Positions 1 to 20,487 of a DNA stretch of 21,373 bases are shown here, piece after piece. Positions within the stretch are counted from its first letter, which is position 1, and every line of letters begins with the position of its first letter. The position numbers were made by a program, and so were the translations under genes. The DNA lies in assembly GCF_006345805.1 (NCBI RefSeq), contig NW_021823794.1:1-21373 (forward strand), given 5' to 3'. This DNA comes from Octopus sinensis (taxonomy: Eukaryota). Under the pieces are notes generated by a model. It ran no database searches. It saw nothing but the letters and a program-made list of their open reading frames with translations, and was not told where the DNA came from.

Positions 1-27
1 AAAATGCCATTTTTACTAAGGAAATTC

Positions 28-1531
28 CATTGCTCGCCAAATTCTCTTACTCGCCACGTATAGATTACATGGAATCTATTGGAGTTTGCCTTAATGATGA
101 GATAATTTGTCGAAAGCAACTGAAATTGCTGCGTTTTTAAACGGTCTCTTCGAATTTAAAGCCAGTAAAGGATGGCTTGAAAAGTTCAAAAAAGGCACAA
201 TGTAAAACTAAGAAGTTTTCATGGTGAATTGGGATATACTGCGGATGAGTTCAAAGACCAAATCGAAGACTTTAAAAAAATTATCTCTTCTAAAATAAAT
301 GAATATGGTTCAGAAAATGTTTATAATGCCGACGAAACCGGCGTAATTTACAAGACCATTCCATCAAAAAGTGTCTGCAGGAAACGCCGACCAGGACAAA
401 ATTACTTAAAGATAGGTTTAACATTTTTAGCCAATTTTCAGTTTTCATTAATGCTTTGCGCAAATATGACTGGATCCGATAAAAGAACCCTTTGATGAGT
501 TCGGGCAGTTTAAGAAACCAAGGTGTTTTAAAAACTTGAACGTTGATGAATATTTACAATACCGGAATTCTTCAAAGGCTTGGATGAACATGGAAATATT
601 TAACGAATGGTTGTTATAATTGGACCAAGACTCTCAAACAAAAACAAAAAAAGATACTTTTGGTTGTAGACCATTGTCCTTCGCATAGAATAACAATCGA
701 ATTAAGTATGATAGAAGTTTTATATTTACCAAAAAACACGACTACTGTGCTTCAACCGATGGATCAAGGAATCATTAGATCATTCAAATCTCATTTCAAC
801 AAATTTAAATTTAAACATATAATTGAACAAATAAACTACGGTAACGCAACTATTGAATGCTATAAAAAATTAACCCTGAAAGATGCAGTCTTATTTTCTT
901 ATCTAGCCTGGAAAGATGTGTCAGTGGATACAATATCAAAATGTTTTCACCACGCCAAATGGGAAAACAGAATTGAAGAACCTATTATGGGAGACCATAA
1001 AATAAAAAATTTCGAACAAATTATAGAAAAATTAATGATCACAGATCCCATAAAAGAGGAGGAGTTTATAGACTTTACGTACTCTGAAAATGACGAACTT
1101 CATGAATTGTTCAAAACAACAAACTATGAAAATAACGATGAAAATGCAATTTTAGACAGTTCAATTACTGAAGATTGTGAAAGAAACAACTGTATTACAC
1201 ATCGAGATGCGATAAAATGTTTGTTTCGACCTCAAAAAATATTTTTCACATGACGATAATTTTGATGTGATATGCTAGAAAGTATATTAAAAATGCAAAA
1301 AAATATAGAGAAAAGATCATACAAAAAAACTATAAATGATTACTTTACTTAAAATTTTGGTTTTTTAAATAAATGTTTCGGCTATTTATTTAAATGTTTA
1401 GATAGTTAAAAATTATAGAAATTTTTTGTTGATAGAAAAATAGGATATTGATTATTTCTCTTACTCGCCAAATTCTCTTAGTCGCCAATTTTGGCTTGGT
1501 CCAAAAATGACGAGCAATAGAGGGAAGACTG
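28..1531 (+). mobile_element. pogo/Tigger (CENP-B/DDE_1) DNA transposon, disrupted; right TIR ends at 1531 followed by TA
   Basis: Manual translation of 69-1352 across frameshifts gives FKASKGWLEKFKK(RH) (Tc5 HTH), VYNADETG, KDRF..LMLCANMTG, KKPRCFKN, KAWMN..IFNEW, LLVVDHCPSH, YLPKNTT..LQPMDQGII and a C-terminal KTINDYFT*. The right end reads ...GAGCAATAGAGGGAAGACTG|TA. The subterminal motif CTCGCCAAATTCTCTTA recurs near 33-50 and 1463-1480. There is an in-frame TAA at 617-619, and the N-terminal HTH is missing. Confidence 0.92.
416..441 (+). other. Candidate 26-nt GT-AG intron inside the pogo transposase
   Basis: GTTTAACATTTTTAGCCAATTTTCAG sits between KD(R) and FSLMLCAN. Removing it restores the conserved KDRF-x-LMLCAN spacing, provided two single-base losses in nearby runs are accepted. 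Confidence 0.5.
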
Positions 1532-1649
1532 TATTATGATTATAAAATGCAATAATTTGTCCTTTCAGGAAATCTGAAAGGTGACTCGTCTTTGACTATA
1601 CATTTTTAGCTTCTTTTCAACGACTTTTAGATCTAAAAAGTTTTTTGAT

Positions 1650-2200
1650 TAATTGTCAATTTTAAAATTAACGTTTCTGTGATGATTGGATCGTTAAAAT
1701 CTCTTCTAAACAACATATTGATATTGTTTACTGCTCCTACAAAAACATCATTACTCAGAAAGTCGACGATGCACTTCGAAATAATTTGGCAAAATTTCCT
1801 TTTGTTAATTTCGGATTCTGAAAATCATATGAAATCAGGTAAACTTTTATGCTTATATTTTAGCTGTAAAATACTTAAAAATCTTTACACCAAATTATTC
1901 CATGTCAGATGTGCCGTTCATCTATTATACAATGCTGTGAGAAATAAGAGACTCTAACTGGAATTGATTCAATGATAGCTACTGTACAAGCTGCAACTAT
2001 CAGGAACAATAGAAGAAAATTAATATTCAAAGACAGAAACATCATTTCATTTCGTGTGCATTTGACAAGATGGGGTTCCTGGCATAAGTACGCTACATAC
2101 TATTTAGAAAATCTGATCGGAATGATTTTGTTGAGTCACTCGCTGTATTTGGTCCAGTGTATGAAAGATCTGTTTTGTTATGGAGGACGTGGTCAACGTT
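1650..2200 (+). mobile_element. Degenerate hAT-family (DUF659-like) transposase fragment
   Basis: FLLLISDSENHMKSG...LYTKLFHVRCAVHLL resembles the SDAAPYM..AG..L...YP..HVTC.AH motif. HLTRWGSWHKYATYY resembles the LTRWG(T/S)W..A.YY motif. Contains stops and frameshifts. Confidence 0.7.
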
Positions 2201-2369
2201 GAGTATAAGGATATTCTGCAAGTGCGGACAAGTCACTTTGATGTGATTATTAGGTTAGTATTGTAGAGAAGAGTTGTTGTGTGAGATCTGTGAGTGATGT
2301 GGCATGTGCAAGTACTGCCTTTCTTTCAAAAGTACGAGTTTCTTCTTTATTCTATACCAAAAAAACTTT

Positions 2370-2495
2370 AATTTATAATTGGCAACTTCAATTTTATAAT
2401 CAACAAGATCGATTTTATAGTTGACAACCTCAATTTTATAATTGGCAACTTTAATTTTAAAATTCGTAAGTTCAATTTTATAATTTACAATTGAA
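2370..2495. repeat. Degenerate 21-bp tandem array, 6 units (consensus ~ATTTTATAATTGGCAACTTCA)
   Basis: Units start at 2370, 2391, 2412, 2433, 2454 and 2475. They explain the NYKIEVA heptads of ORF 2255-2506. Confidence 0.9.
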
Positions 2496-2639
2496 CAAAT
2501 CGACAACGTATAAAATTAGAGAAAAAAATGAAAAATGGGCGTTATTTTAAAATTGGACTTTTTTCATGTAAATTGGACTTGGAAGTTTGCGCTGAATTTG
2601 CGCTATAAAGTCAAACACATTTTTGAACAGTGTTTTCTT

Positions 2640-2960
2640 CAATAATTCTCTCAAGACACCGTAAGCGATATTCTTTTCGTGTCAAGTCCGTTTGACTATT
2701 TTTAAGATGAATAGAATATGATTTGATAAATCTTTATCACTCCTGTCTTTAAAATTGACCATGAATTTTCAATTGGGTGATTATAGGCGTATATGGCACC
2801 AATCGAAGAATTCGATGCATTCTTCCAGTCGTAAATGGCTAGGGGGATTGTCAATTATAACCGGAGTTGTTTATTCCATAGGCCTTGAGAAGACAGTTCC
2901 TGACACTTGTACTCGGCATCAAAAAATTTGATTAAATGCCGTATATTTGATATGAGGGGT
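2640..2960 (-). mobile_element. Degenerate Tc1/IS630-type (DDE_3) transposase C-terminal remnant
   Basis: The minus strand gives PVIIDNPPSH...RL and, after a frameshift, YNHPIENSWSILKTGV. This matches the DN(A)xxH...(Y)SP..NPIE..W..LK signature. Confidence 0.55.
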
Positions 2961-3501
2961 TCCTATTAGGTACTATCAATTATAATTTTGTGATTAAATT
3001 ATTGTTTTATTTTTTTCTATTTATCCCACTTAATAATTTTTTAATAAACATTTTTTACACGTGATTATTTGTGGCGTTTGGTTGTATATATCTTTTATAG
3101 TTTTTTTACTTATTTTAATAGAGATTAAATGAATTATGACTTTTAAAATCCCTAGTAACTAGGGATTATATAAGTTAATTGTGTATTCATACATTCATGT
3201 TTAATCTTTATTGATATTCCATTTGTATAATTCATAATTTATATGAAACAGTTCTATTTATACCTGTTTTAATTTTATTATTTATTTCTATCTCGTTTTT
3301 CCTTTTCTATATTTTACCTGCATTTGATTTGTTATGTCTGATATCTATATATCTTGTTGGTGTTGTATATTCTTTGTATATTTCTACCTCCTTGTCCGCT
3401 AATACTTTTGGCAAGGGGGAATTCTTTCTAATTCATCTCTCTGCCCAATTTGAGATCTTTGTTTTTCTAATGACTAGGGCAACCGGAAAGTTGCTCTTAA
3501 A

Positions 3502-3773
3502 TATTATTATTAGCACTTCCGTAGGAACATTCACAAGGAAAGGAAAGAGTATATTCCCACAGTGCCACAACACGATACAATCTTCTTAACCATCGTTGCC
3601 ATCCTCTGCGGTTTTGTGCAAGCCATCGCAGTTCGTCCAAGTCCTCGCATTTCAGAGTTTTGCCCACGTGTTTCAGATCGTGTTCCAGCGCGACCGGCAG
3701 TGTTGTGCGGGGACGTCCGCGAAACTTTGGGCTATCGAGAGAAAGTACTCTTCCATGGCTTGGTAAGCAGGTG
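3502..3773 (-). mobile_element. 5'-truncated LINE (RTE/L2-like 3' end), 272 bp, (TAA)n tail, 14-bp target-site duplication
   Basis: The direct repeat AAGTTGCTCTTAAA is at 3488-3501 and 3774-3787. The minus strand ends ...GTGCTAATAATAATA. The peptide GRPRTTLP..LEHDL..VG....DL..LR..AQNR..W is typical of LINE ORF2 C-termini. Confidence 0.88.
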
Positions 3774-3882
3774 AAGTTGCTCTTAAAATGTAAAAAATTG
3801 ACCTTAAAAGTCAACTAAATTGCTTTTGGTCTGAACGAGGCGGGGTCGCAGGGGTCTTTATTGGGCTTCAAAATTGGAATTA

Positions 3883-3945
3883 CAGTCTAACCTCTTTTTG
3901 GGGCACCTAGTGCCACAAAAACAGGGGTTTCCCCAGATAGAGGGG
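3883..3945 (+). mobile_element. Isolated pogo-type terminus (TA|CAGTCTAACC...) with an internal hairpin
   Basis: Same family as the end at 14460 (CAGTCTAACC...TGGGGCACC-AGTGCC-CAAAAA-C-GGGG). TTTTTGGGGCAC/GTGCCACAAAAA forms a near-perfect inverted repeat. Confidence 0.7.
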
Positions 3946-3979
3946 TTTTCTAATATTAACGAAAAAAACTAACGTTTTG

Positions 3980-5322
3980 TTAATTTAAAACCAAAAGATG
4001 TTTATCACTTTCTAGCGTACATATGTCGCCTTCCCTCTTGATGATCGTGTACTTTTCCATGTGTAATCCGTCATATAAAGGATATTGCCTTACATTCGCA
4101 TCATTTTCTTGTCTAAATAAATTACATGTTTAAATATTGTAACCTAATTATTACCTCCCCTCCTATGCATAAAGGTTCTTCGTCGTACTTCCATCTTCGT
4201 CTCTGTGCCATTTTTTCCGCAGCTTGTAAAATATTTGAGTATGCTTTTTGTCTTGAATTCGTTAGATCATCAAATTTTTCAGTGACACAGTAGAGTTGTT
4301 CTAATTCTTCATCACTCGTTCTTATTGGAAATTGCATTTTCATAAAGATGTAGAATGGGATATTCCGTGTAGTAGAATGAACAGTATTGTTGTAGTCAAA
4401 TATGATGTCTTTGATAATATCGCAGTATTGTCCAAAATGTCCATCTGAATAACTTTTGGAAGATATCCACCTTTTTATACTTTGATTGAGCCTATAAACA
4501 TTTACATTTAGTCAAATTATAACCTTTCTACCTGACCTTGAATCCAGGGAGCCCTTGGTCTTTCTCGTACATGCTTTATGTTGTACTTTTCACAAAGCCG
4601 AATCATATGGGCATTACAAAATTCCTTGCCGTTGTCCGTATGCAGTATTAATGGAGGCCCCACGTATAAAAAAACTTTTTGAAATAGAGATGTAATTTCA
4701 GCGGAGCTTTTTGAATAAGCTAACTCGACCATGGCATATTTCGAAAAAGAATCAACAATAACAAGAATCTAATCGTTTAAGAGAAGGCAAATACCCAATT
4801 AAATGAGTCATTAATTTCCGAATATCTTCGGAGATCGACCAGATCGGCGATATACCGGTCTCTACTTCTTCTTGCAATTATCGGCGTAATAGGTGGCTTT
4901 GTTGCTAATGCCTTTTTAGACTAAAAATATAGGAAAAATCGTTACCTGACAAGGGACACATTGGGAAATGACTTGATTTATTTCGTTTCTTGTAATTCCA
5001 TAGTAGCGTGATCTGAGCTTAGAAAATAAGCGATCTCTACCAAAGTGATTAATATTGTGTTCAACCTATTGATATTGTATTCAAATACATACCTCAACAA
5101 ATTTGCGTCTCAATTCAGTTTCATCCGTACAAAAAAAACGTAATTTTAGATTATTGTGCCAAATGAATGGCGTTTCGCCTTCAAAAACAAATGATATAGC
5201 CAATTTTGCTAGCCTAAATCGTTTCATCCGAGACGATGAATCCTCCTAAAGAAGAGCACAGGGTTTTCTTGAAATTCTTTGATTTTCTGTAGGGATTCTT
5301 TTGTTATTTGCACTAAACGCAT
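3980..5322 (-). CDS. Ginger/TDD-like Gypsy-type integrase (HHCC zinc finger + DDE core + C-terminal extension), 6 exons, ~400 aa, one frameshift near 5246
   Basis: Exons are 5322-5093, 5065-4946, 4920-4795, 4768-4524, 4491-4144 and 4112-3980. Introns are 5066-5092 (27 nt), 4921-4945 (25), 4769-4794 (26), 4492-4523 (32) and 4113-4143 (31), all GT-AG. The spliced product contains EHNINHFGRD..LRSRYYGI....I...ISQCVPCQ, RYIADLVDL, WILVIVDSFSKY, LHTDNGKEF, RPRAPWIQGQVERLNQSIK and YNNTVHSTT..PF. No RT, RNase H or gag sequence is adjacent. Confidence 0.9.
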
Positions 5323-5421
5323 TATACACACTTGATAAAATGATTAAAATTTATTCATAATTTATCAATATTTATAGATATATTATTGTTTTACGTATTT
5401 TTAATTTTTTTTGTCTACATG

Positions 5422-5461
5422 CGTAACGCTTCCGGCGCCGTAACGCTTCCGGACTGCGACA
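5422..5461 (-). mobile_element. Candidate Ginger-type terminus upstream of the integrase (minus strand begins TGTCGCAGT, then two 17-bp-period repeats)
   Basis: CGTAACGCTTCCGG occurs at 5422-5435 and 5439-5452, and the plus strand ends ...CTGCGACA at 5461, about 140 bp upstream of the integrase ATG. Ginger elements are known to end 5'-TGT...ACA-3'. No matching second TIR was found. Confidence 0.6.
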
Positions 5462-5470
5462 TAATTTATC

Positions 5471-5903
5471 AGTAATACTTTTAACTAAATTAAAAAAATA
5501 AATCGAAAATTTTTTTTAGGGAGAGGAGGTCATGGAAGTGAGGACCACATCTTCGGGGACTTTCTCAGTAACGCTTTTAACTTAATTAAAAAAAATAAAT
5601 CGAAAATTTTTTTTAGGGAGAGGAGGTCGTGGAAGTGAGGACCACATCTTCAAGGACTTTCTAAGTAATGCTTTTAACTGAATTGAACAAAATTAAGTCG
5701 AAAATTTTTTTAGGGAAAGGAGGTCGTGGAAGTGAGGACCACATCTTCAAGGACTTTCTAAGTAATGCTTTTAACTGAATTGAACAAAATTAAGTCGAAA
5801 ATTTTTTTAGGGAAAGGAGGTCGTGGAAGTGAGGAACACATTTTCGGGGACTTTTTCAGTAGCACTTTTGACTAAATTGAAAAAATAAGTCGAAAAATTT
5901 TAG
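5471..5903. repeat. ~97-bp tandem array, about 4.5 units
   Basis: Units start near 5471, 5567, 5664, 5761 and 5858. Each full unit is AGTAA..CTTTTAACT.AATT(A)n..TCGAAAA(T)nAGGGA.AGGAGGTC.TGGAAGTGAGGA.CACAT.TTC..GGACTTT; units 3 and 4 are nearly identical. Confidence 0.95.
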
Positions 5904-7136
5904 TTGGTTAATGTTTTCAAGTGATCAGTTGGCCTTATCAGCCCGGACACTATGACATACGACAATAATTATTTTTTGTCACTTTAATAATTAAATTATA
6001 TATTTGTAATATTTTCAGCTAATTCTTTTATTTCAAAAACTGGAATTTTTTTTTTAAACCAAAATTTTAATTATAAAAACAACAATTAATTTCCCAATAG
6101 GATTATGTTTATGGTAGATATGTAGCCTGGCGGAAAACTGGAATTAAATATGTACACCAAAAACGACGTTGATAGATAGTACGTGGTGTGTGTCCATTTG
6201 AGACTTGGGAATCTCTTCCGATATGCAATTCCCTACAAGCAAGATTTCTTTTCTATAGTCCTGGGGTACAACAAGATTCATTTATTTAAGAGCATACGCA
6301 AGTGATGTCTTACGGTTTTCTGTACTATAAACGGTTTTCTGCACCATTTTCATGTTAATTTACTAATTTAGCATTTTTAGAACGACATTTTAACGGAACT
6401 TTACTTCTACGTTTTATTACTGTGTAGACCTCTGGTTTGTACGTTGTCTAACGATGCAATAAAAATAGTATACGCCTTCATTAATCAAACCGCGGTTGAT
6501 TCTTAGAATTCCAGAATAATCTAGAATGTTCCATCACCATATTTAACAGCTCCCGTTTAACTCTTCTTGCAGATCTTGTGATTCTTGGTTTTTAATTTGT
6601 GATAAGAAAAGATTTTGGATCTGCTCACTCGAATCCGTTTGAATCTCATTTGGGGCTATTTTCTTTTTTTCTCATGAATTAAATTTTTACTTTTACTAGA
6701 ACAACTATAAAATATACAATAAATTCTAGAAAATGATCGAAATACCATAAAAATTCAAATAGACAATAGAACATTATGAGAGAATTAAATTTAAAGTAAA
6801 AATTCTTATGAATGGAGATTAATTAATTGATAAAATGAATACAAATTCACTTGCAAAATAATTTTATCCAGGATATTTTACCAGTAGTCAAATTAATTAA
6901 TCTTCAAAAAAATAAATAAAACAAAAATATTAAACAATAAAACATTAATAGCAAGAAAAAATGAAATAAAAATTAACAACCAGAACCACAACAGAAGAAA
7001 AAAACAACGTGCATAACACGTGCTAATTTATTTTTATTTGATAAATCACGTGATAATTTCGATGTCCATTGACCAATAAAGAGGTTAGCTAAGTTTGGCT
7101 GTACACGTCACTGATTAAAATATTTGTACGCATTCA

Positions 7137-7851
7137 GTGTTTTCTCGACCAGAAAATCAGGTTTGTAAATTATGGGAATATTTTAGCATTGAGTGTATTC
7201 CCAGGCAATGCGATATCCTTTTGGTTACTTTTGAGGAACTTGTCGAGTCTGGGGTTCCCAGAGATCTTACATTTTATAAAATGCTAATCATTTGGTCGAA
7301 AAATGTATTTGGACTGTTGTTGAATTTTGCGGAAGTTCAAATCGCCAATATTGTTGATGGATTGCTATATTTTATTACTGCTGTTTTTGGAGTTATTCTT
7401 GAAATGTTTGGAAAAGGCGAATTTATGAGTTGTGACTTGGAATTTATTTCGACGGTTTTGAATTTGAATGTTGACATTTCACGTCGATTTGAACTTTCCT
7501 GCCACTTCCAAAAATATATGGCACTTTTGGGGAATTTAAATTACGAAATAATGGCCAACTATACACAAATTGTCTCTTTGTGTACCACTAAAACACATAC
7601 CGGTAATTTTAATTAATAAATTTAGCTATCGACATAAATGTGTACAGGAAAGGCAGAACAAGTTCTATGAGGAGTTTGGGGAGAGAATTGACGAGGCGAA
7701 CAAATGTTTGGAGATGAATTGTGCTTGGAAGGGTGCTTTGTTCGTTTCGTGTGATAAACTGGCTGTATCTGTCGCCGATTTGGTGAATTGCCTGTATGCC
7801 TGCTCATTCGCACACTTTATTGAGATCTTCACTAATGTTGGGGTCCGTTAA
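7137..7851 (+). CDS. Hypothetical host protein, probably spliced (candidate 23-nt intron 7603-7625); 5' exon(s) unresolved
   Basis: Two long overlapping stop-free frames are separated by GTAATTTTAATTAATAAATTTAG; joining them needs one extra base. A CAG acceptor lies at 7135-7137. No family recognised. Confidence 0.5.
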
Positions 7852-8243
7852 TACATCCGACCATGCGATAATACCAAATACAATAAGGATTTAATTAATA
7901 GCTTCAGAGATTTTTTTGTTTAATATCTTTTGGGTTTTGTTTGCCTTTTTTATTACATAGTATCTAAATATACATTTAAATAACTCCTAAATGTCAAAAT
8001 AATCTTTTAAATCGCTTATAATAAATAATTTGTTGTGCCAATTGGCACATAAGATTGAATTTGATAAATTAAACATTAAAATTATTATAAAAATAAGTAA
8101 AATACTATTTTTTACATATAATTTATGTCTGCTATTTACTTTTTCCTTTTAATTCAAAGTGGGTCCCTCGCCTCCCTGGGGGTCCCAACAACCTGTCCTA
8201 ATACAAATTAATTCAACATAAAAATGCCTTAATATTTATTATA

Positions 8244-8544
8244 ATGAACAACCCTCAATTAATTTTTGAGAAAAAGAGCATCATACAGAGCAGACTTCAA
8301 AAGTTGAGTTCAGTTAACACGCGACAAATATTGGATATCAGTCCGAATACTATTAACAGATGTCTATGACTTTTACTACAAAGTAAAACAAATTGTAAAA
8401 ATTCCAGGAAGGCAAAATATTGACGTCAATATTGAACTAGAGAAAAAATATGCTAATAATTTTCGACGATTAAAAATGGAAATCGATGATATGATACCAT
8501 TTTTCAGGATGAACTACGATTTTCAGTTTGTTATTTTAAATTAA
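8244..8544 (+). CDS. Possible small hypothetical gene immediately upstream of STX18
   Basis: An ATG-initiated frame is followed by a second ~60-codon open frame (LTDVYDFYYKVKQIVKIPGRQ...). They can be joined by a short GT-AG intron ending at ...GGATATCAG or by a frameshift. No family recognised. Confidence 0.3.
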
Positions 8545-8568
8545 ATCCATTTTAAATCGTATAACTAT

Positions 8569-9513
8569 ATGGTTGATGTTTCTTTGTTCTACAAATCAAC
8601 AGTAAAGGCCCTAAAATACAAACCAATATTAACCAAAAAGACAAGAGTATAATCCAGACGCTCATGAACAAATAATGAAAATATTTCAACTCTTGTAAAA
8701 GCATATAAACTAGTTTAGAACAGCTGTCTCCAATCTATTAGAGATCTCTTGCTCGAATATAATCAAGAATCTCTCAAATGTCATGAAATTATGGACTTTT
8801 CGACTAAACTGCAAAAATATGACGAAAAACTGACTAAATATTTAACTAAATACAAACAATTGAGCGACACAATTTCTAAATCAAATGGAGAAACCGCATG
8901 TTTGGTATTTTTTTTGCAGAAAACTACGTAAAAGGCACTTTAACCAATTTATTTTAGAATGTCTTAAATTATACGAACATTACAGAAACTCAGTACTCAA
9001 TGAATTATACAGATTTGATAAAATGTATTTTTAATGTTATATTTCTAAGAACAAGATTTGATTCGGTTTTCCACAAAACAAATAAAAACAAATTTTCTTT
9101 CAGTGCTAAAAACGTGGATAAAATGGAGGATTTATGTCCTCAGGAGTTAGAACAGGTGATTAGTGAATTCTGACAAAAAAGTTACAAGAAGAGAACGAGT
9201 TGCTGTTTCAAGGACTGAAAACGGTGGATGATGAGATAACTATGGCTGAACGGGCCATTTGTAAAATTGGAAGTTTGATGGATTTGATGGCGTGTTGGAC
9301 CGATCAGCAGAAAAGTCAAATGGAAAGGATTTTGGAGAATTCTGAGGCCACCGAAGAGGATTTGAGGTGTGGGAATAGGGATATGAAAAAGGTTGGCTGT
9401 TTTTTGTGTTTGAGTAGGCTTCCGTCAGTCAAACCACTCGTCGAATCAACTTTTTGATGGTAATTATCATGATGACTTTTTCCGTCATTTTTTTACATTG
9501 GTATAATCCTTGA
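8569..9513 (+). CDS. STX18: Syntaxin-18 / Ufe1 ER Qa-SNARE, multi-exon, with apparent single-base frameshifts in the 5' half
   Basis: N-terminus MVDVSLFYKSTVKALK, then IRDLLLEY and ECLKLYEH. The SNARE region is EDLCPQELEQ|LQEENELLFQGLKTVDDEI...QQKSQMERI...ATEEDLRCGNRDMKK|A, and the tail anchor ends INFLMVIIMMTFSVIFLHWYNP*. All are colinear with animal syntaxin-18 as recalled. Introns are 9025-9049 (25 nt), 9156-9181 (26), 9392-9417 (26) and probably 8695-8718 (24); the junction near 8905-8960 is unresolved. Confidence 0.88.
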
Positions 9514-9578
9514 TTTGCGTTGTTACTACTGTGCGTCTAGTTATCAAGGTGACCAAACTAATGTGTTATACTTATATA

Positions 9579-10455
9579 CAGGGTATTTCATTAATATATC
9601 CTCTAATTTCATAAATATATCCTCTGATTTCATAAATAAATCTTCTTATTCCATAAATATATCCTCTTATTTCATAAATATATCCTCTTATTCCATAAAT
9701 ATATCGTGTAATTTCATCAATATATCCTCTTATTTCATAAATATATCGTTTTATTGTGCACATAAAACTATCATGAATAGAAAATCTAGAATTTCAATGA
9801 CACAAGAAAAATTTGAGACAATAAATAGATTTTATCTAGAGAAAACTACAAAAGAACTATCCAATATAACTTTACTACATGAATCCACAATAAATAAAAC
9901 AATCAAAAAAATTCAAAATTGTCAAGACGAAGCTTCATATGTGGAATTGTTTCAGAAGTCTGGACGCAAAAAGGCAAACAAATTAAGCTTGTTTTCTGAA
10001 ATTCGGAATATTCTTGGAAATGACAATTCTTTAACTCAAGTGGGGCTAAAGCAAAAACTTGCCAAAAATATTTCGTTGCCACAGTTATGTCGAGACGTTA
10101 AAGAAGCAGGACTGAAAAGAAAAAGACTTAAGAAAAAATCTAATATATTATTAACAGAAAGTAATATTGACAAAAGAATGACTTTCTCTTTAACAGTATC
10201 TGGATTTAGAACCAGAAACTTGTTATTTCTGGATGAATCCGGATTTAATTTGCATACCTCAACAAATTATGGATATGCAGAAGTAAATCATGATCCAATT
10301 CTATATCAACCTGCATCAAAGGGAAAAAATATATCGTTGTGTTCAATAATATCCATAATGGGAATAGAATTTTCTAAAATAATTGATGGTGCATACAACA
10401 CAATTATTTTTTCTGAGTTTATCAATGAATGTTTTACAAAAGGAATTTTCACTGA
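9579..10455 (+). mobile_element. Tc1/IS630-type (DDE_3) transposon, left end plus 3'-truncated transposase (likely ATG 9773)
   Basis: TA|CAGGGT terminus at 9579. The protein runs MNRKSRISMT...HTH-like...LLFLDESGFNL...GKNISLCSII...GAYN...F..FI and is cut off before the second catalytic Asp (DN motif). Confidence 0.88.
9585..9752. repeat. 21-bp tandem array, 8 units (ATTTCATAAATATATCCTCTT), forming the Tc1 left subterminal region
   Basis: Units start at 9585, 9606, 9627, 9648, 9669, 9690, 9711 and 9732, beginning 6 bp inside the CAGGGT end. Confidence 0.95.
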
Positions 10456-10715
10456 TGATTCAGATAGCCACAAGAAAGGCCGAGCTGGAAGCGCTGACTG
10501 GGCACATTCTGAATGTGAGCAATGGGGTCAAGGGCAAGACTCCCCCCTTGGTGCGTACTTTACTTCGTCGGGAACGAGCTGGAAAATGGGACCTCAACGA
10601 GTTGAGCCGTGTCCGGGCAGAGAGGGAAGAGCTGATTCTAGTTTATCAGAAGAAGCTCTCAACTCATGAGTCTCGGTTTCAGCGCAGGCGGGAGAACAAC
10701 CTGTTTGAGTTAATC
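10455..10715 (+). mobile_element. Fragment of an RLE-type non-LTR retrotransposon (R4/Dong-like region upstream of RT)
   Basis: GC content rises abruptly. The peptide IATRKAELEAL...ELILVYQKKLSTHESRFQRRRENNLFE resembles the R4/Dong K..LR..L..L...KL.A...RLRRY....QNRLF motif as recalled. Confidence 0.55.
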
Positions 10716-10721
10716 ACAGGT

Positions 10722-10765
10722 TGTGGAAGGTCTTTGAGTGCACGGTCTTTGAGTGCATGAGTGCA
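10722..10765 (+). mobile_element. TGT-initiated terminus with 15-bp-period subterminal repeats
   Basis: TGTGGAA followed by GGTCTTTGAGTGCA at 10729-10742 and 10744-10757, then a partial TGAGTGCA. It begins where the R4-like homology stops. Confidence 0.5.
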
Positions 10766-10860
10766 ATATTTTTACTAAGAAAGAATTCCGCATTATTTCT
10801 TAAACAAGAACTCATTTTACCTATTTAATTAATTTTTTTTTAATTATTTTTGCCTGGAGG

Positions 10861-11570
10861 TCAGCTCAACGACGCCGCGCTGCGTATCGAGTGGCAGTTT
10901 CCGCGGAGCACCGCGACCGAGATTCGCTGGAAGAGCCAGCTCGTCTCCCTCCGGTCGTTAGTCTTCCTGGCAATCATCCTGGCAATGTCGGTAAGAAGGC
11001 GAGTCGCAGACCTGCCGACGATTCCGGATGTTTCGAAGGCGAGGGGGACAAACTCGTAAGAGTCCGAAATACTTCCATACTTCGTCCTCTTAGCGTCCTC
11101 AGCCTGAGCACTGGCTGAACCCGGGTTAGTGATTTGTCTTGAGTAACATCGTCGCGGAGAACGAGTCAACACAAGTGGCATCCCAAATCAGGGACTTGCC
11201 TTCCCTGAAAGGGAAGGTAGTCATCCCGTCAGGACGCTTTCCATCACTCCGACAGAGACCGACTGGCTCTAGAGTGGAGGGGAAACCTGCCGACTCTAGT
11301 GCCCTTTTGACGACGTCATTGAGGTGAGTGTGGCGAGGAATTCTGCCAGCACTCTTCTTGCACGATAGGGCGTGCAAACCGTTTGGCGAGATTGTAGACC
11401 CGCACCGGCATGGGTGGGGCTGACAAATGTCCAAGCCCAAGCATAAGCAAACACCAATCCGTAAGGATTCGTCGTCCAGAAGTAGTCCCGTACTAGGGGT
11501 AGGAAGTGCTTTGAGCCAGTCTCCCGTATGTGGCTGGCAAGCGCAGTTTAGAGATGCCAGTTGGGCCTTG
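10861..11570 (-). mobile_element. CRE-clade non-LTR retrotransposon, 5'-truncated (zinc knuckle + restriction-like endonuclease)
   Basis: GDWLKALP...GLLLDDESLRIG, CRCG....GLHALSC...GRIPRH.HLND, LEPVGL.RSDGKRPDG.T..PF..GKSLIWDATCVDS, K..KY....Y.FVPLAFETSG, LFQRISVAVLRGN; stop at 10861-10863; one frameshift near 11125-11180. Confidence 0.92.
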
Positions 11571-11699
11571 GTACCTTGACCGAAGTTTACACAGAGTGCC
11601 TGAGCAAAAGATTTCGTCCCAAAGTGCCTGAGCAAAGGTTATCTAATTCGCGCTTACACTCAAATATTGTCACACATCAGAAAATTTCTCCTCTATTAA

Positions 11700-12310
11700 T
11701 AAAGGCATATCTATCCCCCTTTCGATGTGCAACAACCTGGCCTCTGAGATCCTACTCAAATCTTTCGGATCTTGCCTGGACGGTGCTTTTTCGGATGGGC
11801 TTACTACCTGGGATCGCTCCTTTTCTGAGAGGCCTGAAGATTTATCCTCCCAACGTGCCTGGGACTCTATCGCATGCCGAGCGCGTGTGTCTGAGCTCTC
11901 GGCAACCCTTGACCAACACCGCCTGGCATGGCTTCGTGCGGCATCCGCCCCTCACTCTGGAGGCTGGCTGAATGCTCTTCCTCTTTCCAGCATCGGGACG
12001 TGGCTAGACGATGCTGCCATACGCATCGGAGTGGCTCACTGTCTCGGCCTGGATGTTTGTGCAAAACACCGCTGCAGATGCGGTGAGGACGTTGACGAAA
12101 AGAAACTGCACCCACTTTCCTGCAAGAGGAGCGCAGGCAGGGAACACAGACACAAAGCCCTCAATGAAATCGTGAAGGCCGGTCTCGAATCGGCGGGCCA
12201 TTCGTGCCTCCTCGAACCGGTCGGACTCGATCGGGGAGATGGCAAAAGGCCTGACGGGATGACAATATTCCCGTACTCGTCGGGGAAGGCCCTCGTATGG
12301 GACGTTACCT
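11700..12310 (+). mobile_element. Second CRE-clade fragment, divergent subfamily, truncated at both ends
   Basis: SSQRAWD...SGGWLNALP..SIGTWLDDAAIRIG...CRCG....HPLSC....GREHRH.ALN...LEPVGLDRGDGKRPDG.T..PY..GKALVWDVT, ending abruptly at 12309. Confidence 0.9.
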
Positions 12311-12320
12311 AGAGAAGCTG

Positions 12321-12644
12321 CTAGGAAACTTTTAGGGTCGGCGTCCGCAAATAGCGTGGCATTAATTTTACTTGTCCGATTTTGGAATTAAACTCAATTG
12401 AAGAAAGAATTTCCGTTTTGGGAGACATATTTTCTGGGCTATGACTTGACAAAAAAGAGTCCTCCTCTACTCTATTCCTAACTTGTGTCTTCACGTTCAG
12501 TATTGACTTTGTAGTTTGAAAATTTTCATTGAACGCCCGTGTTATATGAACCCATCCACCCCGAGGTATCCTTCCAAATCTTTTCCTTGCAGAGTGTACC
12601 ACTTCTTTGGCGGATAATATCTTAAAAGCATTAATTAATAACAA
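12321..12644 (-). other. Unassigned coding remnant, possibly Myb/SANT-like helix-turn-helix
   Basis: The pattern W..I...FN..F...KS...VK..VRN loosely resembles Myb/SANT-like or MADF folds; there is an upstream in-frame stop. Confidence 0.25.
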
Positions 12645-13040
12645 ATCTTACAAAACTGATTCATACGGAAAATTTAAGAAATTGTCACTCCGAAACGACT
12701 CCAAAACAAACATAAAAATGACCCAATTTATAAAAGTGTCAGGACCTGCAATATCAAGACATGAGGGTAGATGGCGTAGTTATCCAAAAAGAAGAAATCT
12801 TAATCAGTAGATAAAGTTTTTTAATATTGGAAAATATTGAAATTAACTTATTTTGATGGAAATTAACGTGATATTATTAAATTATCTATGAATATGGTCA
12901 TTCCTATGAATTGTGCATTTCTAAAATAGTACGTGGAAGGAGGAGAGTAATAAAACACACCATCCAACATTAAAACACAACCAAACCTATCAATATATCG
13001 GATTCAGGATCTCCTAATTCCAATTCAGACCTTTGTAGCA

Positions 13041-14110
13041 TTACGTCCCTTCCACACAGATCTGAAAAAAATCATCACCAAGCTGTGAAGAAATGTGCCC
13101 CAAACAAGATCACAGTCCCCAAACAATTCAACATCAAAAGTAAAGTCAGAAAGTGGTTCACGATTAATCAGGATTTGTGGAACTGACCCCCGAACTCTGC
13201 CTAAAGAGTCGCACATAACGAACCAACGGGGGATTGAGGACACCGGATGGACACTGAGAGAGGAGCCAATCACAAGGACGAGGTCACACTTTTCAATGTC
13301 ATGTTCCAGACTCGAATAAAAATGGGATCCAAGCTGTTCCCCAAAAAACACAATTTCAGGTTTCATGACTCCTTCACCACACGATACACATCTAGGAACA
13401 TTCTGTTCGACTATATGGTCCTTGAGTAGTTCAGTCTTCACTCTGTCCCACCAATCATACACACAGAATGGGAAAAGGACCCATGACATTCCACAAGATG
13501 TTCAATTCCGGCCAATCTATCCAGACCGTCAACATTCTGAGTGTAGCAGTTCAATAACTTGCCCTGACATTCCAGTTGTCGTACAAATTTGTGAGTAAGG
13601 CCAGGTTGGGCATCCAACATGAGCAGATCCTGAGATGAAATGGAAAATCTTACACGACATATTTGTAGAATGGACGAGGATTGTTTTGGAAAAATTTCAG
13701 GTCGAAAATGTCGGTAGGAGAAGAGAGTTCGGGGAACTCCTTGCTCAATCGAGCATATAGTCCGTCACTTGATCGGAAGTCCGGAATTCCACAAGAAACG
13801 GAAACCTGTGATGAATACACAAAACAGTGAACCCCTGCACCGCACAGAACCAGAATTGATTTTGACTCTTGAATGATGGATACGACGTCAGCAATGGTGT
13901 TTACATTATCTAGTTTCTTACGACGAATGTTAAGTAAGGAGTAAATGTTAAGTAAGGAAAGTAATCGACGTCGAAACCTGCAAATAGTTATTGCGTAGGT
14001 ACTAGAATCATCATGGTCTTCATCGCTCGAAGACCATTCCTAATGTTTAAAAAGGTATTCAATACAATTCCGATACAGGGTGATTCATTGGGAATATCAC
14101 TAGGAATATA
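13041..14110 (-). CDS. SIRT1: SIRT1/Sir2 class I NAD-dependent deacetylase with short introns and apparent single-base frameshifts; both ends uncertain
   Basis: RKKLDNVNTIADVVSIIQESKSILVLCGAG|VSVSCGIPDFRSSDGLYARL...PRPFYKY, THKF...GKLLNCYTQNVDGL, VECHGSF, VPRCVSC, MKPEIVFFGE, DLVLVIGSSL.V.PV, VPQILINREPL, FDVELFGDCD. Introns are 14040-14065 (26 nt), 13806-13832 (27), 13630-13653/5 (24 or 26) and 13201-13227 (27). Frameshifts lie near 13447 and 13078. Confidence 0.92.
13926..13958. repeat. 18-bp-period tandem duplication inside the SIRT1 coding exon
   Basis: AATGTTAAGTAAGGA at 13926-13940 and 13944-13958; reads in frame as SLLNIY-SLLNIR. Confidence 0.9.
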
Positions 14111-14390: not shown

Positions 14391-14459
14391 TTGGACAGGT
14401 TATGACCTTCAGTGATGTATTTTTGACATTAGTTGCAACCATCAGTTTGACAGGTGATA

Positions 14460-15215
14460 CAGTCTAACCCCGGTGTGGGGCACCAAAGTGCCCCAAAAAG
14501 CGGGGCTGCCCTTCCAAACAGGGGTCTGGTTCAAACCATTGAATTATAGTTTATTTAACTTAAATTTTGGTTTACTTTGCGAACAAAGAACTCTTTCACA
14601 TTTCTCAAAGTGTTTATATGCGATAATACAATAAGTTGTGCTTTTTTGCTCTATAGTTTGATAGATTTCTATTCTGTTTTTTAATTGATTTTGATTAAAA
14701 TAAATCATTATTTTTAAACATTTTTTTGAAATAATCAGTCAATTTCAAATTTTTCTCATTTCTTAAATCTTTTCCGAGTTGAAATCTAATATTTTTGGAG
14801 TGTCTCGAAAGATGTATTTTGCGCTACATTTTCCAACTCATCCATCATTTCATACGTTTCTAATATCGTTGTTTTGTCCTCTGTCCCAGTTCCATTATAA
14901 AATTTGCGACTTTTGACTAGATCTTCATTTTCTTCAGATATTACTTTGGTTATTATTTCTTCCAGGACTTCTTCCCCGCAATTTTTATCTTCAAAAAATT
15001 CTTCTCTATTTTCCTCATTTTCTTCCAACAATTAATTATTGTTGTTTCTTAACTTCCATCCACGCTTTTCTAACGATATACCATAATCTGTCGCATATCT
15101 ATATTTTCAAAGATTTAGGATTAATTGTTGTATCTTCTTTCAAATCGAACATAAAGTCCATTAAAAGTTTGTGTAATATACTAAAACATTTATTATACCC
15201 ATGTCTAGAGGTTGA
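14460..15215 (-). mobile_element. 3' half of a second pogo/Tigger element with terminal TIR at 14460
   Basis: The minus strand gives IQPLDMGII, VRKAWMEVKK(T)TIINCWKK, an acidic tail and KLTDYFKK. TA|CAGTCTAACC terminus at 14458-14470. Confidence 0.82.
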
Positions 15216-19448: not shown

Positions 19449-19661
19449 AATCGGAATAGCTGTTGTTTGAAGCAATGCACACTTCATCAAACGTGCAGCT
19501 CGTAAAAATCGTAAATATCCTTGCCGCAAATGAAAACGACATGTGACATATCGCCCATTTTGCTTAGGCCGGTTTGGTCACTAGCTATATTTTATTATTA
19601 TTTTACAAGTATGAAGAAAAAAGTAAGCAATTGTGGCTAAGGGGATTGTCGAGAGCTGAGG

Positions 19662-20319
19662 TCAGCTCAACGATGCCGCGCTGCGTATTGAGTGGCAGTT
19701 TCCGCGGAGCACAGCGACCGAGATTCGCTGGAACAGCCAGCTCGTCTCCCTCCGGTCGTTTTGTTTTTGTGGAGATTTTTCTACCAATGGCGGTGAGGAG
19801 TTGAGTCGCAGCCTTTCCGACGATTCCAGAGGTTTCGAAGGCGAGGGGGGCAAACTCAAAAGCGTCCGAAATACACCGGTATTTCGTCATCTTGTCTCTT
19901 CAGCCAGCGCACTGGCGGAACCCGGGTTTGCGACAGTCCTGGGAGCATTGTCATCGAAAAAGAGTCGACACACGTGGCATCCCAAACCAGGGACTTGCCT
20001 TCCTAAAAGGAAAGGTCGTCATCCCGTCGGCGGCTTGCCGTCGCTCCGGGAAAGGCCGACTGGCTCTAGGGTGGAAGGGAAACCAGCCGACTCTAGAGCC
20101 CTCCTCACAACGTCATTCAGATGAGTGTGACGGGGAATTCTCCCGGCACTCTTCTTACACGACAAGGCGTGCAAGCCGTTTTGACGAAATTGAGGACCCG
20201 CACCGGCAAGGGTGGGGCTGGCAGATGTCCAAACCCAATCGTAAGCGATCCCAATCCGCAAGGATTCGTCGTCCAGTAGTAACCCCGTACTAGGAGTGGG
20301 GAGAGCTTTGAGCCAGTCT
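19662..20319 (-). mobile_element. Fourth CRE-clade fragment, 5'-truncated, same subfamily as 10861-11570, frameshifted
   Basis: Directly alignable at DNA level with 10861-11520 (both start TCAGCTCAACGA.GCCGCGCTGCGTAT.GAGTGGCAGTTTCCGCGGAGCAC). Homology ends at ...GAGCCAGTCT (20319). Confidence 0.93.
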
Positions 20320-20487
20320 GAATTATCTTTCTCTAAATTTTTTCTAAAAAAATAAATGTCCCTGGTTTTTGAACAGACTGGTTTCAATGGTAAAGCAGTC
20401 AACACCAGGTTCTTTTTGAATGAGTAGAATTGAGTTCAAATCTTAATATAAATAGTGAGAAAAATTTTTAAATCCAGTTACTCCAGG

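Follow-up and report, generated by a model that had tools for sequence, protein, structure and literature searches.

Transposons of the Ginger2/Tdd type move with an integrase-like transposase, and their features were described by Bao et al. (PMC2836005). Metazoan Ginger2 elements make target-site duplications (TSDs) of 4 bp, and TDD-4 and TDD-5 make TSDs of 5 bp (PMC2836005). The mammalian genes KRBA2 and SCAND3 (ZBED9) were domesticated from Ginger2 (Llorens et al. 2012, PMC3575427). Here we analysed a stretch of 21,373 nt deposited under Octopus sinensis (contig NW_021823794.1; the whole stretch is called the window), which holds an integrase gene on its minus strand. We read positions 5461-4006 as a 5′-complete, 3′-truncated and frameshifted copy of a Ginger2/Tdd-type cut-and-paste transposon, residing in a micro-intron genome that is most probably that of a dicyemid, and we place the probability of this reading at roughly 0.85.

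The window is AT-rich eukaryotic DNA of about 30% GC with two 50%-GC blocks. A model that read the letters alone had described here an integrase-type DNA transposon gene with five GT–AG introns of 27, 25, 26, 32 and 31 nt in phases 0, 0, 0, 2 and 2, a single-base shift near 5246 and a TGT-type end upstream (the original prediction), and all of these features were recovered. With the five introns removed, the sequence from 5245 translated without interruption as far as a TAA at 3983-3981. The first part of exon 1 (5246-5322) starts with an ATG at 5322 and holds about 25 codons (MRLVQITKESLQKIKEFQENP...) in a frame that differs from the remainder of the gene, and its second part (5093-5245) is in the main frame. 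Intron 1 (5066-5092, 27 nt, phase 0) reads GTATGT...AATAG, and its retention would bring in an in-frame TGA. Exon 2 (4946-5065, 120 nt) encodes an HHCC zinc finger (H79, H83, C112 and C115) and is followed by intron 2 (4921-4945, 25 nt, phase 0), by exon 3 (4795-4920, 126 nt) with the first catalytic aspartate, D142, and by intron 3 (4769-4794, 26 nt, phase 0). Exon 4 (4524-4768, 245 nt) contains HTDNGKEF with D203 and most of QGQVER with E239. Intron 4 (4492-4523, 32 nt, phase 2) cuts the arginine codon of QGQVER/LNQ. Exon 5 (4144-4491, 348 nt) and intron 5 (4113-4143, 31 nt, phase 2) precede the authentic part of exon 6 (4006-4112), which ends with ...YPLYDGLHMEKYTIIKREGDICTLES; the transposon sequence itself stops at 4006.

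The spliced product matched the Pfam domains Integrase_H2C2 (E 8.9e-9) and rve (E 8.1e-14). The residues H79, H83, C112, C115, D203 and E239 did not vary across the family alignment, and D142 hardly did. D142, D203 and E239 aligned to the catalytic triad of prototype foamy virus (PFV) integrase, with the 35 residues between the last two that define a DD35E core. A regular-expression search of the 391-residue conceptual protein found neither a GPY/F nor a YPYY motif, and Pfam matched the product to H2C2 and rve only, with no host domain such as KRAB or SCAN fused to it. Among the database homologues, the nearest 14 (E of 1e-87 or better) had integrase-type domains and no reverse transcriptase (RT). 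They were 314-458 residues long, except for two longer Gypsy-like proteins, P0016 and P0142, of which P0016 had been part of the query alignment. These 14 proteins came from microsporidia, from contigs of the same assembly and from metagenome or Logan assemblies. The closest of all, P0001, was 47% identical and is encoded without introns in a 2272-bp element (locus L002). The closest annotated relatives carry the NCBI name 'KRBA2-like', as expected since KRBA2 and SCAND3 derive from Ginger2.

Whether the five short intervals are introns was judged from related copies. The sampled sequence of about 100 kb contained at least five dispersed and diverged copies in different contexts, and the loci compared were L001 (VCDQ01012456.1), L004 (VCDQ01001185.1), L005 and L008 (both on VCDQ01000492.1, 1.29 Mb) and L009 (VCDQ01011016.1). 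The L001 copy (12525-13811) had introns of 27, 26, 32 and 33 nt at sites 1-4, and the L004 copy had introns of 24, 23, 24 and 26 nt at the same sites and lacked intron 5. The L008 copy contained introns 3 and 4 (27 and 26 nt) and was without introns 2 and 5, its site 1 being unreadable. In the L009 copy, sites 1-3 had introns of 25, 30 and 25 nt, the fourth intron was decayed (27 nt), and site 5, which is shared with the window, had an intron of 26 nt. The comparison of intron positions that the original prediction had suggested thus placed introns 1-4 at the same codons in diverged copies. Exons 2-4 were 120, 126 and 245 nt long in the window, L001 and L009 copies alike. Beyond a GT(A/T) start and a TAG end there was little agreement between their intron sequences.

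All five introns of the window copy start with GT and end with AG, and each of them, if kept, would bring an in-frame stop within a few codons. Seven intronless homologues aligned to the spliced protein without a gap at any of the five junctions. In pairwise comparisons of the window, L001 and L009 copies, the uncorrected proportion of synonymous differences (pS) was 0.83-0.85, which is saturated, and that of nonsynonymous differences (pN) was 0.18-0.21, with about 74% amino acid identity and 43% identity at third positions. Purifying selection has acted between the subfamilies. Because the sites are shared while intron sequence and length differ, and because synonymous sites are saturated at a pN of about 0.19, the five intervals are best understood as genuine spliceosomal introns that are old and would once have been needed for expression, a conclusion drawn from evolutionary and not from transcript evidence. 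The long residence that had been proposed for the element was supported by copies whose synonymous sites are saturated and which have intron positions and exon lengths in common. Eliminated sequences of the Paramecium type (TA..TA) were considered and rejected, as the frame was restored only by removal of GT..AG intervals. The fourth intron of the L009 copy (10084-10110, 27 nt) has lost both splice sites (GA...AT) and contains no stop, so that read-through would place a 9-residue insertion in the QGQVER motif; it is an example of intron death by mutation.

The class of the element was most evident from its complete relatives, which end in TGTSAC... terminal inverted repeats (TIRs). When the surroundings of the window, L001 and L004 copies were searched for inverted repeats in general, only AT-rich chance pairs appeared, and the TIRs became visible through a terminus-motif search in further loci. 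An element of 1764 bp at L009 9165-10928, with TIRs identical at 34 of 42 positions and the TSD AATTA/AATTA, contained only the integrase gene and all five intron sites. At L007 7146-9365 an intronless element of 2220 bp had TIRs with a 23-nt perfect core plus the termini and was flanked by TGGCT/TGGCT. The third perfect TSD, ATGCT/ATGCT, flanked a 6.2-kb element at L009 1320-7537, with TIRs matching at 10 of 12 positions at the tips. A fourth element, of 4163 bp at L008 9483-13645 (TIRs 59/70 identical), had flanks TAATA/TGATA that match at four of five positions. The relatives thus showed three perfect 5-bp duplications and one 4/5 match, and the 4-bp duplication expected in the original prediction was not found. 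The element in L002 that holds P0001 has TGTCACCGTCC at both ends and no evident TSD.

Two of these loci had further features. The 6.2-kb element of L009 has the termini TGTCACAGG/TGTGACCGG and an integrase zinc-finger fragment inside, and it is a separate, larger Ginger-like family of the same genome. The left end of the L002 element (63-121) is itself a 59-nt palindrome (TGTCACCGTCC...GGACGGTGACA), as if two termini had been joined head to head.

The original prediction had left room for a domesticated host gene, that is, a Ginger-derived integrase with a cellular function, comparable to KRBA2, SCAND3 or GIN1, that had acquired host introns. Its host-like intron density, the strong purifying selection between copies and the 'KRBA2-like' names of its relatives are what such a gene might be expected to show. 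The number of copies argues otherwise, as at least five, dispersed and diverged, occur in the sequence sampled and several of the relatives are flanked by TIRs and 5-bp TSDs. The window copy retains a transposon terminus, is frameshifted and truncated, and its product is joined to no KRAB, SCAN or other host domain. Domestication is very improbable on this evidence.

A remnant of a Gypsy/Ty3 long terminal repeat (LTR) retrotransposon, whose short interruptions would be mere decay, would also explain an HHCC plus DDE integrase homologous to those of Gypsy and retroviruses, and TGT...ACA ends occur in LTRs as well. Pfam searches of all open reading frame (ORF) segments of at least 45 residues in window 1-10100 found no RT, RNase H, protease or gag domain, the sole match being an unrelated pogo DDE_1, and self-comparison found no LTR-like direct repeats flanking the gene. 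The linked RT, RNase H or LTRs that would mark the locus as ordinary Gypsy debris were thus absent from 1-10100, within 4-5 kb on either side of the gene. Complete family members are only 1.8-2.2 kb long and their terminal repeats are inverted, not direct. There is no GPY/F motif, and proteins with an RT domain were only 21-30% identical to the window integrase. GT..AG interruptions at conserved codons are not decay, and retrotransposition through a spliced RNA would have erased them. A Gypsy origin is thus barely credible. The domains, TIRs, TSDs and lack of RT upheld the proposal of an RT-less, Ginger2/Tdd-like integrase-type DNA transposon gene with genuine introns.

The 5′ end of the Ginger2/Tdd-type copy in the window is well defined. 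The minus strand from 5461 starts with TGTCGCAGTCCGG (in a longer reading, TGTCGCAGTCCGGAAGCG...), which occurs once in the window, and TGTCG fits the TGTNR consensus. The 5′ terminus and terminal repeat region (5420-5461) reads TGTCGCAGTCCGGAAGCGTTACGGCGCCGGAAGCGTTACGC and forms a GC-rich island amid AT-rich DNA. This terminus matches the start TGTSRC.GTCC that is found at the 5′ end of the L001, L004, L008 and L009 copies and at both ends of the L002 element. The 5′ untranslated leader (5323-5419, minus strand) contains no ORF, and its position equals that of the leader of about 170 nt in the complete L009 element. Directly next to the terminus on its upstream side, at 5465-5901, is a 97-nt satellite (4.5 copies, 90% match, no strand assigned), which lies outside the element and is the host DNA that received the 5′ end. 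The L004 copy sits in a different satellite (L004 2000-3300 and 5230-5340).

Further into the gene, a 1-nt frameshift was placed between about 5262 and 5246. It is taken to be real because homologues and sister copies conserve the out-of-frame N-terminus: the 25 N-terminal codons of the window gene match P0001, P0006 and the L001 and L009 copies. It may be genuine in the DNA or else an assembly error. Two other explanations were tried and rejected. A sixth intron of 14 nt (GTGCTCTTCTTTAG) near 5250 would be shorter than every intron seen, and an indel suits the spacing in L001. Taking an ATG at about 5224 (MKRFRL...) as the start would remove the need for a frameshift, but it leaves out 25 upstream codons that homologues conserve.

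At its other end the element is adjoined and truncated by an unrelated 133-bp repeat with an internal hairpin (3873-4005, no strand assigned), which is 95% identical to L001 17953-18084. The copy in L001 has no integrase sequence beside it. This repeat supplies the last 8 codons (4005-3981) and the TAA stop (3981-3983) of the frame, so the uninterrupted HHCC-DDE frame running to a stop, as originally described, held from 5245 onwards with its Pfam domains but not for those last codons and the stop. We also considered 4005-3873 as the family's own 3′ end and rejected it, since the L001 copy is not preceded by integrase C-terminal coding sequence, no ...ACA end is present, and identity is 95% versus 68% for the genes. 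The repeat is short and dispersed and has an internal palindrome (GGGGCACCTAGTGCC.), and a weaker copy of it was seen at 14457-14511 of the window. Compared with L009 and P0001, the window copy has lost about 17 C-terminal residues (...GERLHGIHISRLAKID) plus the 3′ leader and the 3′ inverted repeat. Neither a terminus search nor an alignment of the 5′ end to the DNA downstream revealed a 3′ TIR in the window. A similar downstream alignment for the L004 copy found no 3′ TIR, and that copy, judged from the point at which its flanking satellite resumes, appears to end near 3345 without an ACA terminus. Because of the frameshift, the truncation at 4005/4006 and the missing 3′ TIR, the window copy is defective and dead, unable to make transposase and, with a single end, immobile. 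The potential activity that had been suggested for it was thus not supported.

An intact member, as we infer, would be an element of about 1.8 kb with TGTSAC... inverted repeats that is transcribed. The host spliceosome would take out up to five introns of about 25-30 nt, and the mRNA would be translated into a protein of about 410 residues that combines an HHCC zinc finger with a retroviral-type DD35E core and an SH3-like tail. After binding to the inverted repeats, this protein would cut the element out and insert it again, with the 5-bp target duplication as the result.

The host of the element was approached through published gene structures and through neighbouring genes. In Dicyema the median intron measures 27 bp and a gene contains about 5 introns (PMC6543705); in the genome of D. 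japonicum, sequenced from specimens collected from Octopus sinensis, exons average 198 bp and repeats make up 49% (PMC6736024). Among animals, introns below 30 bp are known only in dicyemids and in myxobolid myxozoans (PMC13644364). A SIRT1-like gene on the minus strand of the window (about 14000-12990) had GT..AG introns of 27, 26, 27 and 23 nt, the first of them inside the GAG/VSVSCGIPDFRS NAD-binding motif, which is canonical only once this intron is removed. In L008, clathrin heavy-chain exons on the 1.29-Mb contig that also holds the L005 copy were separated by introns of 21-28 nt, and the encoded sequence aligned gap-free to mammalian clathrin and was clearly diverged from it. The original prediction had taken the density of micro-introns to imply long residence and splicing-dependent expression. 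Because the published dicyemid values and the neighbouring host genes show the same introns, the density and size of the introns in the integrase gene are the host norm, those of an average dicyemid gene.

From these features the window and its sister contigs are very likely to be dicyemid DNA, and the sister contigs were apparently assembled together with that of the octopus (GCA_006345805.1). The best match of the SIRT1-like gene was 'sirtuin-1-like [Octopus sinensis]' at 94%, and the next match reached only 53%. If the contigs are dicyemid, then the KRBA2-like, sirtuin-1-like and CFDP2-like proteins listed in nr under 'O. sinensis' would be parasite genes or chimeras. No mention of dicyemid contigs in the O. 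sinensis assembly came up in a search of the literature. The SIRT1-like piece of the window has a 1-nt frameshift near 13450, and a 96%-identical 2-kb copy without this frameshift lies in a rearranged context at L004 5537-7571; the pair could be a duplicated segment or could represent a different haplotype or species.

The window could instead be true octopus nuclear DNA that received the element and the SIRT1-like fragment from a dicyemid by horizontal transfer, the micro-introns being unspliceable relics. All related contigs, one of them 1.29 Mb long, were indeed deposited as Octopus sinensis, and contact between host and parasite favours the transfer of transposons. This is improbable, however, as the housekeeping genes on the same contigs are unusually divergent and have introns of 21-28 nt (clathrin heavy chain and the SIRT1-like gene, the latter with a best non-self match of 53%). 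Whole contigs behave as a micro-intron genome, as expected for co-assembled parasite DNA. A myxozoan, a ciliate or a microsporidian is equally hard to accept as the host. Myxobolid myxozoans, ciliates and microsporidia do have introns below 30 nt, and several close homologues came from microsporidia. Long ORFs are open in the standard code, unlike the ciliate code, and about 5 introns per gene, SIRT1 and clathrin of metazoan type and abundant pogo, Tc1 and repeats resembling long interspersed nuclear elements (LINEs) misfit microsporidia. The sister contigs derive from an Octopus sinensis sample, the octopus from which Dicyema japonicum was collected.

Intronless members, P0006 (L005), P0005 (L006) and P0014 (L007), were present in contigs of the same assembly, and P0006 lies with an intron-bearing copy on one contig of 1.29 Mb. 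Sister families without introns are still present in these contigs as well as in other hosts. A neighbour-joining tree built on the core region united the window, L009 and L001 copies in a clade with a bootstrap of 100, in which the window and L009 copies, which share intron 5, were sisters with a support of 58. All intron-bearing copies grouped together with a weak support of 40, and the enclosing clade (76) included the intronless Pseudoloma, P0002 and L002 elements. The intron states ranged from sites 3 and 4 only (L008, with site 1 unreadable) through sites 1-4 (L004) to all five (window and L009).

Parsimony favours the acquisition of introns within the lineage, with intron 5 the latest, and this direction is suggested by the tree. 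The L008 copy without intron 2 needs either a loss or another branching order, and with a support of only 40 for the intron-bearing clade any order of gains and losses is tentative. We offer as a tentative view, to which we give somewhat less than even odds, that the lineage gained its micro-introns de novo, one by one, after it had settled in a dicyemid genome. If this were true, the family would record intron gain as a natural, dated series, in an animal in which introns were thought to be only inherited and shrunk, and it would be a case of a selfish element refashioned until it cannot be told from an average gene of its host. The variation in intron state among subfamilies, together with intronless relatives in the same genome, makes a small and tractable system for the study of intron origin under miniaturisation.

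Several points weigh against reading the locus as a Ginger2/Tdd-type transposon of a dicyemid. The window copy has a single terminus, so its own TSD cannot be read, and the 5 bp of its relatives differs from the 4 bp of metazoan Ginger2. The suggested placement in Ginger2 rests on architecture, termini, TSD and the 'KRBA2-like' names, not on a tree with Repbase Ginger2 references. Splicing is supported by evolutionary comparison rather than by transcripts, and a collection of 5.8 billion proteins contained no near-identical spliced protein, the best match being the 47% of P0001. None of the five intron-bearing copies examined was intact, so the family may no longer be active. The assignment to a dicyemid is indirect, as the related contigs are filed under Octopus sinensis and the DNA nearest to the window (96%) is in such contigs.

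The micro-introns also affected how the locus had been annotated. The ORF listing of the window contained only pieces of 71 and 73 residues from the integrase gene. The Gnomon model P0015 (L001 10001-19228) joined the ORF of an RTE-type endonuclease to precisely one exon of the integrase copy, exon 3, and then ran into intron 3, and the Gnomon model of the sirtuin-1-like gene read through one 27-nt intron and omitted upstream exons. As had been foreseen, ORF callers and Gnomon gave fragments or chimeras. These programs shred such transposase genes into 70-residue pieces or chimeras because they cannot splice introns of 25 nt, and in the repeat and gene annotation of dicyemid-like genomes whole transposon families would be missed. 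Parasite contigs on the megabase scale appear to have entered the octopus reference and, through it, the set of 'Octopus sinensis' proteins, which may mislead comparative studies and studies of horizontal transfer.

The remainder of the window contained other repeats. A pogo-type DDE_1 transposon remnant (E 7e-25) was found at 229-1253 on the plus strand, and a Tc1/mariner-type DDE_3 remnant at 9515-10669 on the same strand is preceded by a coding tandem repeat at 9584-9755 (INISS...). An ORF of 105 residues on the minus strand (3497-3814; …GRPRTTLPVALEHDLKHVGK…RRGWQRW…) had no Pfam match and a 41-nt match at L001 10967-11007; it resembles the C-terminal tail of LINE ORF2 proteins. The two GC-rich repeat blocks (about 50% in 30%-GC DNA) at 10464-12312 and 19658-20405 share 83% identity between them and 95% with L004 8044-8846, and weaker copies occur in L005, L007, L008 and L009. 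Their ORFs of 100-195 residues had no Pfam match, and we suspect a retroelement-derived family. No Rfam or tRNA matches, and hence no RNA genes, were found in the window.

Compared with known systems, the family resembles Ginger2/Tdd in its single gene for an integrase-like transposase with an H2C2 finger and a DDE core, without GPY/F, YPYY or RT. It also has the TGTNR ... YNACA termini, inverted repeats of tens of bases, AT-rich targets and element lengths of about 1.8-6 kb of that group, and the 5-bp TSD of the relatives of the window copy is that of TDD-4 and TDD-5. It differs from the Ginger2/Tdd elements of PMC2836005 in having up to five introns, which that paper reported for Ginger1 only. 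It further differs in TIRs at the short end of the range (about 34-60 nt) and in a dicyemid-like host that had not previously been listed, and from metazoan Ginger2 in its 5-bp TSD. The range of Ginger2/Tdd would thus be extended by a new host, by intron-bearing members and by a metazoan case of a 5-bp TSD.

In carrying canonical introns along with an integrase-type transposon, the family is like Ginger1, which has 1-4 GT–AG introns (for example, Ginger1-5_HM of Hydra) and from which GIN1 and GIN2 derived. The YPYY and GPY/F motifs of Ginger1, its extra Ulp1, OTU and PHD domains and its 4-bp TSDs of CCGG or CCGT are not present here. The Ginger2-type integrase core is shared with KRBA2 and SCAND3. 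Those genes are single-copy, lack TIRs, are fused to KRAB or SCAN and hold the integrase in one exon, whereas this family is multi-copy and unfused, has kept TIRs and TSDs and is divided by micro-introns. The gene structure is like that of ordinary dicyemid genes, with 5 introns of a median of 27 nt, GT..AG boundaries and exons of 120-348 nt against a mean of about 200 bp. Dicyemid introns have been described as ancestral and shrunk in place; in contrast, the introns of this family lie in a mobile element whose closest relatives, some of them in the same contigs, have none.

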